Assembly (NCBI RefSeq): GCF_041956535.1
Contig: NW_027192210.1
Coordinates: 80,984 to 137,209 of the forward strand
Direction: 5' to 3'
DNA: 56,226 bases
Origin: Calcarisporiella thermophila CBS 279.70
Lineage: Eukaryota; Fungi; Calcarisporiellomycota
The translations under genes were made by a program, and so were the position numbers. Positions 2,841 through 6,140 of the stretch are shown piece after piece. Positions within the stretch are counted from its first letter, which is position 1. Every line of letters starts with the position of its first letter. Under the pieces are notes generated by a model, which saw only the letters and a list, made by a program, of their open reading frames with translations, was not told where the DNA came from and made no database searches.

Positions 2841-2906
2841 TGCACGCATTCAATGACAAAAGTGCTACAAGTAACTTCAATTGATAATAAGTATTTGATA
2901 TTCAAC

Positions 2907-4360
2907 ATGCGTGCTATTCTACTTCTCTCACTTGTCCTTGCCACACCTGGGTTGGTACTTGGACAAGAGCGGATCGAAATGCCCATTAGTGCCGAGGAGA
3001 TGACCGGGAAAAGTGCTGCTGATAATTACATTGTGATTTTGAAAGAGGGTATCACTAGTGCGGCAGGCCTTCCGATCTCCGACAAATCTAAGACTAAGTC
3101 GTTTCGTATTGGAAACTTCCATGCTCTTGCCGGGAAGTTCGACGCTGAATCCTTGAGCGCATTGAAATCGAATACTATGGTGCAATATATAGAAAAAGAT
3201 AAGATAGTCAAGACATTGGCAACTGTAACTAGAGCAATCTCTAGCACGAACGCAACTGACACGAATGACCTGCAAGAGAATATGTCCGCAAAAGATATTC
3301 AACGCGGAGCTCCTTGGGGATTGGCACGTATCTCCCAGAGGCAAAAGTTGCCGCGATTTAGCCTATTTGGACGTAGATACGATTATGATCCAAACGGTGG
3401 GGAAGGTATCAAAGTTTATGTGATGGACACAGGGATTAATATCAATCATGAGGACTTTGAGGGCCGTGCGGTAAACTCTGAGCTATTGTGCCAATTTTCT
3501 GGCAGCAACTCACAAAATTTCAATTTTTATTATAGAGTCATGGCGCAACAGTATTTGAAGATACTGCAGATACCCATGGCCATGGCACACACGTTGCAGG
3601 CACTGTGGCTGGAAAGCGATTTGGCGTTTCCAAGCGAGCCAACGTGGTGAATGTGAAAGTTTTGGGGGGAGATGGGGAGGGATCAACCATGGGATTTATA
3701 GCTGGATTGGAATGGATTGCTCGAAATGCGGTAAGTTTAGTTTTAAAATGCTTCGTACGGGACCTTATCATATAATATGAATTCCATATCCTTCTTTGTA
3801 ATAGGATAAAACAAAAAGTGTCATCAATATGTCTCTAGGTTTCAATGAAAGGTCCCTTGCAGTTGACATGGCAGTAGGCGAAGTATGTCTCTACATTGCT
3901 CCTAATTCATCAAACTGTATTAAGAGAAATGTGTAAATAGGCAATTAAAAATGGGCTAATTGTTGTCGCTGCTGCTGGAAATGAGAAACGCGATGCGTGT
4001 CTTTCCTCGCCTGCTAAAGTAACAGACGTTATTTCCGTGGCTGCCTCAAACATTGATGACAACCGCTGGGACGATCCAAGAGCTGGGTCAAACTTTGGAC
4101 CAGCCTGCGTCACACTGTGGGCCCCGGGCGAAGACATAGAGTCTGCCGATTTCCGATCTAACACGGGATCCACCACCAAGTCAGGAACCTCAATGGCCGC
4201 ACCTCACGTTGCCGGTGCTGTAGCGAATCTGCTATCCCGTGAAGGTGCATCTTCTCCCCAGGAGATGGCAGAAAAACTTACCCAAAGGGCGACACGAAAC
4301 GCGATTAGTAATACTAGAGGAGCGCCTAACCTACTCCTCTTCGAAAAGAATACCGACTAA
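2907..4360 (+). CDS. Secreted subtilisin-like serine protease (S8A, proteinase K-like) with I9 propeptide
   Basis: Exons 2907-3470, 3536-3730, 3805-3882, 3941-4360 (~418 aa). Signal peptide MRAILLLSLVLA; I9 motifs (YIVILK, VQYIEKD); PWGLARIS; catalytic MDTG, HGTHVAG, AAGN, SGTSMAAPHVAG. Confidence 0.96.
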
Positions 4361-5066
4361 ACATTTGAGCAACTTAGGAGGGTATCAATGCCAGCTCATT
4401 AATTTATCTATTCAAGTCTGCTGTACAACTAAATTATGGCTGGCCTAAATTTAATATGTTTCTAATATGTCTAATAAGGAGAATGGTGTCAGTAATGACT
4501 AGTAGGATTAATTTGCGTAGTACTTATATTAATTAATCTTAGGGTAATGACTCTAGTATTAGTTTCTAACTACGATTAATGTTCTTTGGTATAAATTATT
4601 GTATAAACACTTTTTAATGAACAAATATCTCAAAATTCACCTTGGACTATTGCAAGTTTAATGTTGAAATTTAAGTAGCCCCTAGCCTCCCGCCCACAGT
4701 ATCATTTTTTGGATGAAACTAAACTAGCCTTATTTTATCAAAATACAAACTACACGTTCACCATCAATTTAGATATTTATCCTTAACGGATTAAACTCGA
4801 ACAAACTTCAGCATTTCTATCATACGACAAAACTATTGTCCAATTGCAAACGCTTTTCAGCTATTCCATTAAAGCGTTTTCAATAGCCGTATAAATATCC
4901 ATACAACTTTTTTCTTCGGATTCCATATTTATTTAACAAATGAATTTGAACCTTTATCTTAGAATAGTATTGATCATTTGAAAGATATAAATATAAATAT
5001 AGATATAGTATAAAGCTTTATAAGTTGGTTTCATTTAGACCATGTAGACAGCACCCAAAAGGTTGG

Positions 5067-5243
5067 CTAGCAGCAGTAGCAGGCGCCTGGGTAATAACAG
5101 CAGAGATGATCACAATTCCCTTCTGCCCTAAGGGTCGCTTCGTCCTTAAGCGTGGAAGGGTCGACGCCTTTGGGCAAGGAAGGACTAGCGGAGGCAAGAG
5201 CACTGAAAGCCACGAAGGCAACGGCGAAAAAGTAGAGCTTCAT
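5067..5243 (-). CDS. 58-aa secreted disulfide-rich pre-pro-peptide
   Basis: Intronless ORF MKLYFFAVAFVAFSALASASPSLPKGVDPSTLKDEATLRAEGNCDHLCCYYPGACYCC*. Signal peptide, Cys-free pro-region, 6 Cys in the last 15 aa. GC-richer than its flanks, with a TATA box upstream. Below the ORF-track cut-off. Confidence 0.85.
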   Translation of the reverse strand: MKLYFFAVAFVAFSALASASPSLPKGVDPSTLKDEATLRAEGNCDHLCCYYPGACYCC

Positions 5244-5332
5244 TGGTGATTATGGGAGTGGAAGACCTGAGCTGAATCGAGTAGTAGAGATGCGCTTCAC
5301 TGTAGGAATGAGAAAGGGTTAGAAAGAGGCAG

Positions 5333-5340
5333 CTTTTATA
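5333..5340 (-). promoter_or_regulatory. TATA box of the Cys-rich peptide gene
   Basis: TATAAAAG on the minus strand ~90 nt upstream of ATG 5243. Confidence 0.6.
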
Positions 5341-6140
5341 CGTTTTTTCCTCCGGGTCACACCCCGCAAAGCCTCCTCTAGACCATATGCAAAGTGGAGG
5401 TAAAAATACTTCCTTCGGATCTAAGCGAGCGCCCAAATACCGGAGGTTAGACTCTTGTATATCCGTTGGCCCGATCAGGAACATGAAGTAGTAGTAGTGC
5501 AATAGTTTGAATTGAGAATAAGATACAGATATAAGCGCTCTAGAGGGCTCCAATTGGGGTCACGGGTCTGGGTATAACTCAACCATCCATTTATGGACAA
5601 TCATCTTGGTTATGGAAAGCTGCTTTCGGAAATCTTACTCGGCCTCCATCCATATCCCCCCTCGGATTTAGCCTTGTTCTTCTCTCCAGCATAGAATAGC
5701 CCTACGTGCTCGGTGCCTATTTACTATATCGGTAAATTGCATATCTGCTAGGAGGCGGAGAAGCTAAGCAGGAGAGGAATAAAGGGGCAAAGGGAATCAG
5801 TATCCTTTGTTAATTGTCATATCATCAACATAATATGTGAAAAATAAGCCCGCAGATTTATTGTATTATCGTCGAGAAACTGGGATTCCTAATAAGGAGC
5901 AAGTTTAGATACACTTTCATGGCTTTTTTTTTTAAGTGCTCGTCTAGCAATTTTGCTTGAGGTAAAGAGGGAAAAAATATAATAAAATATATTTTCTAGT
6001 TTCTTCAGCTCCAGAGAGAGGAAGGCACACACCTCCTAACCAATGATAAGAAGAGAAGTCGAATAATGGGTTGAAAACAGAATCCAGAATATATAAAACA
6101 CAAAGCAAGCAAAAATGAAAACACGGAGTAATGCTTGAAG

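Follow-up and report, generated by a model that had tools for sequence, protein, structure and literature searches.

An open reading frame (ORF) of 58 codons in the genome of the fungus Calcarisporiella thermophila CBS 279.70 is probably a real gene for a secreted, cysteine-rich peptide, its six cysteines either locked in disulfides or engaged in metal binding. The narrower proposition, that this is a lineage-restricted, single-exon C. thermophila gene encoding a disulfide-locked secreted pre-pro-peptide, stands at about even chances on the features of the DNA and its conceptual product. The ORF lies in a 56,226-nucleotide stretch of contig NW_027192210.1 (assembly GCF_041956535.1), the whole of which is referred to below as the window. 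C. thermophila is the sole species listed in its genus and the only one found sequenced in its phylum, Calcarisporiellomycota, which is a phylum of its own.

The three parts of the predicted product are given with their coordinates in Table 1. The signal region opens with MK, continues with 15 hydrophobic residues, none of them charged, and closes with Ala-Ser-Ala as its cleavage motif; it passes a heuristic that takes account of the Kyte-Doolittle mean over 10 residues, N-terminal charge and small residues at -3/-1 (best 10-residue mean 2.47, K2, small residues at both positions). The putative pro-region spacer is free of cysteine, rich in proline, serine and threonine, and has TLR at its C-terminal end. 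A dibasic Kex2 site was looked for in this spacer and none was found. The core that follows has its six cysteines arranged as C-x3-CC-x5-C-x-CC (loops of 3, 0, 5, 1 and 0 residues), so that cysteine makes up 40% of it, and also contains three tyrosines and the string C-D-H. The layout that had been claimed for this ORF in an initial annotation (58 aa, a signal, a cysteine-free spacer ending in TLR, six cysteines in 15 residues running to the stop, and an upstream TATA box) can be read in the sequence in every particular. These are the sequence features of a generic small secreted cysteine-rich pre-pro-peptide (predicted signal, even number of cysteines, short mature part), and the signal peptide, pro-region and even cysteine number are shared with the fungal small secreted cysteine-rich proteins, which are often orphans and under-annotated.

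With three disulfides, the 19-residue peptide (residues 40-58) comes to 2080.63 Da (monoisotopic, computed) and carries a net charge of roughly -2; the corresponding mass for the 39-residue form that retains the spacer (residues 20-58) is 4172.75 Da. AlphaFold2, run on the single sequence, places a hairpin (48-51/54-57) around Pro52-Gly53 (CCYY-PG-ACYC) at low confidence (pLDDT 61.8), a point against the gene reading.

The ATG of the ORF is the first possible start, because it is preceded, two codons before, by an in-frame TAA. A single-exon model is adopted because the ORF holds no plausible splice donor and nothing coding comes after it. (The same lack of an internal donor, the same upstream stop and the AT-rich, non-coding character of the downstream DNA rule out an exon of a larger spliced gene.) At position -3 relative to the start codon there is a C rather than an A, which counts against the gene reading.

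Table 1. Coordinates of the candidate ORF and its parts, of its neighbours in the window (bare numbers are window positions), and of other cysteine-containing peptides and strings elsewhere in the genome (contig numbers follow the letter C)
Feature	Position	Strand	Description
Secreted Cys-repeat protein gene	576 to 1, off left end	-	Predicted signal peptide MRFSACLIALPFLLVANVLA
S8 subtilase gene with I9 propeptide	2853-4360	+	Convergent with candidate ORF
Possible polyadenylation signal	4928..4933	-	AATAAA, ~135 nt downstream of stop, in 30% GC tract
Candidate ORF	5067..5243	-	58 aa, ATG start, from ORF listing; MKLYFFAVAFVAFSALASASPSLPKGVDPSTLKDEATLRAEGNCDHLCCYYPGACYCC
Stop codon	5067..5069	-	TAG, immediately after last Cys
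Six-Cys core, residues 44-58	5070-5114	-	CDHLCCYYPGACYCC, 15 residues
Putative mature peptide, residues 40-58	5070..5126	-	AEGNCDHLCCYYPGACYCC = AEGN-CDHLCCYYPGACYCC
Putative pro-region spacer, residues 20-39	5127..5186	-	SPSLPKGVDPSTLKDEATLR
Predicted signal peptide, residues 1-19	5187..5243	-	MKLYFFAVAFVAFSALASA; predicted cleavage ASA/SP
Predicted 5' leader	5244..5332	-	CT-rich block gctgcctctttctaaccctttctcattcctac; ATG-free up to start codon
TATA box	5333..5340	-	TATAAAAG, 97 nt upstream of ATG; direct reading
Actin-family gene, read as Arp2-like	6141 to beyond 7263	-	Candidate ORF ~900 bp downstream
Twin-octapeptide ORF	L037:910-1086 = G000:C6:100910-101086	+	58 aa; MIWLKLCIVIWLVLIQNGLAAP...SAR-CRYVWVCD-RK-CRYVWVCD-stop
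CCLQGCALCC-stop	G000:C6:850888-850920	+	In-frame string; CC-x3..6-C-x1..2-CC-stop pattern
CCMRIISCLPCC-stop	G000:C6:977628-977666	+	In-frame string; CC-x3..6-C-x1..2-CC-stop pattern
CCDDDCCDDCC-stop (DDCC peptide)	G000:C19:494550-494585		In-frame, non-repeat match to the same pattern
CCIPCPTCPCC	G000:C4:1000283-1000315	-	Cys-dense, not simple repeat
CCDCGDKCCCC	G000:C4:755408-755440	-	Cys-dense, not simple repeat
CCGAGTCCGCC	G000:C4:100174-100206	-	Cys-dense, not simple repeat

The gene reading has to be weighed against the alternative that this is not a gene, merely a frame left open by chance between the Arp2-like and subtilase genes, with hydrophobic codons at its start and a TGC/TGT-rich end. 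A chance origin of this kind is judged unlikely, though it is to be taken seriously, and part of what tells against it lies in the flanking DNA. Among chance ORFs of 40-120 aa, the octamer TATAAAAG is present at -160..-30 in only 0.7%, and the shorter TATAAA in 3-5%. Transcription is inferred to start within the predicted leader, where the 97 nt ahead of the start codon hold no ATG (an outcome with a chance probability of ~0.2, roughly reckoned as 1 - 1/64 per position). A TATA box at -97 with no ATG between it and the start is a promoter layout that would fit a gene. Moreover, base composition steps down at the stop codon: GC is 0.51 at 5101-5400 and 0.30-0.32 downstream of the stop, so that the ORF lies where a GC-richer stretch comes to its downstream end, and exons in the C. 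thermophila genome are likewise GC-rich. The TATA box at the right distance, the ATG-free leader and the GC step at the stop all count against a chance frame. The AATAAA downstream is weak evidence for a polyadenylation signal belonging to the ORF, since this motif is common in AT-rich DNA.

The GC-rich patch itself has a further property. Four of the six frames are open across window positions 5025-5553, the other three being of 74 aa (+), 67 aa (-) and 122 aa (-), so that the length of the candidate ORF is by itself no evidence of a gene; the three further open frames speak for a chance reading. These antisense and overlapping ORFs were also considered as the actual gene and rejected (no Pfam match, low recognition by a protein language model). 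Upstream, the stretch from 5250 to 5850 has 44-46% GC, compared with about 30-37% in other intergenic DNA of the window; neither a gene nor a repeat nor an Rfam RNA can be recognised within it. A repeat or transposon at the locus is rejected on the grounds that the DNA is unique in the genome, and a non-coding RNA on the grounds that Rfam is empty nearby.

How often chance would produce a signal-like start and a cysteine-dense tail in one ORF was estimated in two ways. The empirical sample, 256 kb altogether, joins the window to twenty 10-kb stretches of the genome (four of the twenty, L023, L027, L028 and L037, contain N runs of 1,011-3,569 bases, where sequence is masked or withheld) and yields 917 ATG-initiated ORFs of 40-120 aa. 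The signal-peptide rule is passed by 8 of the 917, the candidate included, and three or four of these 8 are likely to be first exons of secreted proteins. At least six cysteines in the last 20 residues are found in 2 of the 917: the candidate and one other, read as chance. The simulation (block-wise first-order Markov chains keeping local composition, run to 1.05 genome equivalents) generated 108,062 ORFs of the same size range, 0.45% of them signal-like and 3 with at least six cysteines in the last 20 residues; not one combined the two. Multiplying the simulated marginal rates gives an expected joint occurrence of about 0.01-0.03 per genome, which argues against chance. On the other hand, a single chance ORF with six cysteines in 20 residues turned up in only 256 kb, and if it sets the rate, the expectation becomes about 0.4 per genome at this empirical rate of cysteine tails, for a candidate picked from the whole genome. 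The resulting range of about 0.01-0.5 per genome excludes the TATA box from the reckoning, and its limits are rough and optimistic, since the choice of features followed inspection of the ORF.

The composition of the core also has a bearing on the chance reading. Cysteine codons are the antisense of GCA and ACA, and low-complexity DNA rich in CAG and GCA is common in this genome; strings of TGY are accordingly frequent as the antisense of polyQ/polyA-type repeats. (What this means in practice is that the looser pattern CC-x5-C-x-CC has 676 matches at the DNA level, mostly antisense to CAG/CAA repeats.) Codon usage is neutral, as a chance ORF would have it, and is uninformative: the likelihood ratio of coding to chance ORF is 0.9 by full log-odds and 1.45 on synonymous choices only. 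Against chance stands an asymmetry in recognition by the protein language model, in which the candidate scores 2522 and the antisense ORF of 74 aa scores 1228, and where 2300 is reached by 91% of known-family proteins and by 9% of shuffled ones. This value probably reflects the signal peptide and is therefore not independent of the signal-peptide evidence.

No relative of the candidate came to light in the collections searched, which is again compatible with a chance frame. A six-frame protein search for paralogues in the 28-Mb C. thermophila genome returned the ORF itself and nothing else. The exact spacing C-x3-CC-x5-C-x-CC, put forward in the initial annotation as a probe for paralogues, disclosed none in this genome: as a DNA pattern it occurs in the candidate and in a TGT repeat only. 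A Pfam scan gave 0 families at E <= 10, phmmer against PDB sequences gave nothing at E <= 10, and no relative was met in contigs from metagenomes, prokaryotic genomes or viruses; looking up the exact product matched no contig, and the best cluster score in the ESM Atlas was 0.78. Five phmmer matches among 1.84 billion representatives are long repeat proteins that contain DHLxCYRPG or a similar short string and share no cysteine framework; they are taken as chance. Two of them (P0001 and P0005) are long proteins built of a ~50-aa repeat, ...GIGGYDL..ADRVFA.DYDGSGK.DHL.CYRPGTG..., whose likeness in the DHLxCYRPG string is likewise chance. A word-index protein search also found no match, though the collection contains the annotated proteins of C. 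thermophila. Since the annotated neighbour subtilase is present in that public set and the ORF is absent from it, the ORF is unannotated there, as had been supposed when it was said to have been missed by annotation. At present the candidate appears to be a singleton orphan among the collections searched. The notion of a new family is not supported by these searches, which found no paralogue in the genome and no homologue elsewhere, whether among proteins or in metagenomic, prokaryotic and viral sequence.

A strict orphan with neutral codon usage, lying in an intergenic spacer beside an older gene, might also be a proto-gene that arose de novo and not long ago, one that is transcribed and may be translated but has no selected function. 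This reading is very improbable: a signal, a spacer and an even-numbered cysteine core ending at the stop, in the right order, exceed what would be expected of a random young ORF.

The genomic setting is consistent with a gene for a secreted product. Of the two nearest neighbours, the convergent subtilase has a first exon 100% identical to VTP21DRAFT_4800 of Calcarisporiella thermophila, and its best homologue outside this genome is 43% identical; with no genome close enough, synteny cannot be used. Going by the names of its homologues, the enzyme is presumably of the cerevisin/proteinase K type and not a kexin, and for this reason no part in processing the peptide is claimed for it. At the left end of the window, the signal of the secreted Cys-repeat protein is followed by a KR site; an intron interrupts the gene after ...QQIGEV, and beyond it come an RRKK site and a ~41-aa repeat with four cysteines (IPYAAxTCGAPTAVVKC...SCSNPPGxC); a TATA box, TATAAAATA, lies ~85 nt upstream of its ATG, as read off the ruler. 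Judged by their sequences, the subtilase and the Cys-repeat protein make this a neighbourhood rich in secreted products, and their being secreted lends support to the gene reading.

Comparison with known peptide families narrows what the product could be. Fungal defensins (CS-alpha-beta) and PAF/AFP proteins are usually cationic, and their cores, of about 38-60 residues, have beta-sheet folds. In contrast, the candidate core has 15 residues, is anionic and has no Pfam match; the initial statement that it corresponds to no fungal defensin or PAF/AFP framework is borne out by the empty Pfam and PDB searches. The heat-stable enterotoxin ST/guanylin family (PF02048) comprises pre-pro-peptides of similar size with a C-terminal mature part of 18-19 residues and six cysteines; ST is bacterial, and its spacing is CC-x2-CC-x3-C-x2-C. 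There is a local likeness around L-C-C...P-x-A-C, but the cysteine spacing is different, and ST was dropped as an identification when the Pfam scan returned no PF02048 match at E <= 10. A Kex2-processed repeat protein (KEP) is also discarded, the candidate having a single core and no dibasic site.

The designation as conotoxin-like is apt for the architecture only. Conotoxins and the candidate have in common a signal, a pro-region and a very short three-disulfide C-terminal part of similar cysteine density. The frameworks differ: framework III of the M-superfamily is CC-C-C-CC, the candidate is C-CC-C-CC, and in the conotoxin framework tables consulted the latter order occurs only inside frameworks of 8 or 10 cysteines and not on its own. 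No sequence similarity to conotoxins was found in Pfam, the 1.84 billion representatives or the PDB. Knottins, with C-C-CC-C-C or C-C-C-C-C-C spacing (PMC5522442), also differ from the candidate in cysteine order.

The closest counterpart in cysteine order is found in gymnosperms. C-CC-C-CC is the defining order of the beta-ginkgotides, hyperdisulfide peptides of 18-20 aa and ~2 kDa with a 16-residue six-cysteine core (Wong et al. 2017; PMC5522442). They have I-IV/II-VI/III-V connectivity, no regular secondary structure and strong resistance to heat and proteases (PMC5522442). [quoted passage not shown] The six-cysteine C-CC-C-CC order was not found by those authors in ConoServer, the Knottin database, ArachnoServer or the PDB (PMC5522442), and a subsequent paper continues to describe the scaffold as confined to ancient plants (PMC6651024). 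The initial annotation, which compared the spacing with fungal defensin and PAF/AFP frameworks, missed this plant family, the one described with such a cysteine order.

The candidate and beta-gB1 (YETGCKRCCYLDEYGCIRCC) share more than the order of their cysteines. Both have a tyrosine after the first CC, a glycine near the fourth cysteine, four residues before the first cysteine (YETG in beta-gB1, AEGN in the candidate) and a mature part that ends in CC. The core has 15 residues in the candidate and 16 in beta-gB1 (C-x2-CC-x6-C-x2-CC), cysteine content is ~40% and the mature mass ~2 kDa in both, and both precursors are short and begin with signal and propeptide. The differences are as definite. 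Loops are 3/5/1 in the candidate, whereas 2/6/2 is conserved among beta-ginkgotides, as are the loop-2 residues Tyr10, Leu11, Asp12, Glu13 and Gly15 (PMC5522442); of these, the candidate has the tyrosine after CC and a glycine two residues before the fourth cysteine, and no Leu-Asp-Glu. Unlike the beta-ginkgotide precursors, it has neither a C-terminal tail nor a His/Tyr site (its spacer ends TLR/AEGN). Membership in the beta-ginkgotides therefore fails, and if the gene is real the likeness is best read as convergence rather than homology. That peptides with C-CC-C-CC order do fold into three-disulfide, 2-kDa structures in gymnosperms (PMC5522442) nonetheless supports the gene reading.

If the ORF is a gene, its signal peptide would carry the product into the endoplasmic reticulum and would be cut off after Ala19, and the six cysteines would oxidise to three disulfides. 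The spacer may then be trimmed after Arg39, giving the 19-mer; otherwise the 39-mer would be secreted. The trimming step is the weak one, because there is no dibasic Kex2 site. The product would be a compact, acidic and tyrosine-rich peptide of the 'hyperdisulfide' type. Stability to heat and proteases is probable in view of the compact core with its 40% cysteine, and would suit a thermophile. Since the peptide is anionic, membrane disruption of the kind practised by cationic antimicrobials is unlikely. The best guess at a role is that of a stable extracellular ligand or inhibitor, acting in competition or signalling.

The main functional rival to a ligand or inhibitor is an extracellular metal-thiolate role, in which the secreted peptide would keep its cysteines reduced and bind Cu, Zn or Cd as a metallothionein-like thiolate cluster. 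This is improbable. The two CC pairs and C-D-H would provide a dense set of ligands within 15 residues, the peptide is acidic, and the same genome encodes the DDCC peptide on contig 19 (G000:C19:494550), another cysteine-dense string that runs to its stop codon; in the oxidising secretory pathway, however, six cysteines would normally pair. Classical metallothioneins are cytosolic and lack both a signal peptide and aromatic residues; the candidate, with its predicted signal, its three core tyrosines and no metallothionein match in Pfam, is not one of them, and the tyrosines and the empty Pfam scan also tell against a secreted relative of that kind. Finally, the only characterised peptides with C-CC-C-CC order are fully disulfide-bonded (PMC5522442).

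The interpretation of the candidate as a gene for a disulfide-locked peptide gains from a second small ORF on contig 6 of the same genome (L037 in Table 1). It too has 58 codons, a signal-like start and a spacer ending in arginine, with TATAAAT 128 nt upstream; unlike the candidate, it has two cores, split by RK. Its TATA box and that of the Cys-repeat protein gene thus lie about as far from the ATG as the candidate's does. Its two copies of CRYVWVCD, of eight codons each, differ from one another at six synonymous and no non-synonymous positions. Without selection on the peptide sequence it would be difficult to account for six differences that are all synonymous, and the ORF is very likely to be a gene whose secreted product is the precursor of two disulfide-loop octapeptides. 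The ORF is present once in the genome, has no Pfam match and bears no sequence relation to the candidate. A similarly built gene under purifying selection elsewhere in the genome argues against a chance frame: it shows that genes of such a build are real in C. thermophila and so raises the prior for the candidate.

Other cysteine-rich strings are scattered through the genome. The pattern CC-x3..6-C-x1..2-CC-stop has six loci genome-wide: the candidate, the contig-19 DDCC peptide, a TGT repeat, an out-of-frame string on contig 4 and two strings on contig 6. Apart from the candidate, only the contig-6 pair and the DDCC peptide match it in frame and outside repeats. Three further cysteine-dense strings on contig 4 (Table 1), which came up among the 676 matches to CC-x5-C-x-CC, may represent metallothionein-like or other cysteine-rich genes. 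It is tempting to see in part of this material a hidden set of TATA-driven, single-exon genes of ~58 codons, mutually unrelated, each encoding a signal, a spacer and a tiny cysteine core; the candidate, the twin CRYVWVCD peptide, the contig-19 DDCC peptide and the contig-6 CC...C..CC-stop strings would be examples. On this bolder and doubtful proposal, the candidate would be the first hyperdisulfide peptide from a fungus to carry the beta-ginkgotide cysteine order, that is, an independently invented, heat-stable, three-disulfide 2-kDa scaffold.

Either outcome would be instructive. If the ORF is not expressed, it illustrates that signal-like starts and cysteine-dense tails can arise in GC-rich, low-complexity spacers, and that orphan ORFs of similar size need RNA or peptide evidence before a gene is called. 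Should the peptide be produced, few three-disulfide peptides described from a fungus would be smaller, and it would come from a thermophile whose phylum has almost no molecular biology, with a cysteine order so far reported only from gymnosperms; three-disulfide peptides of such a kind are valued as heat- and protease-resistant scaffolds. The candidate is plausible as a fungal counterpart of this rare hyperdisulfide scaffold. By the features of its ORFs, the C. thermophila genome looks as though it holds an unannotated layer of small peptides to which the candidate belongs, and production of the peptide would mean that the annotation of early-diverging fungi overlooks a layer of tiny secreted peptides.
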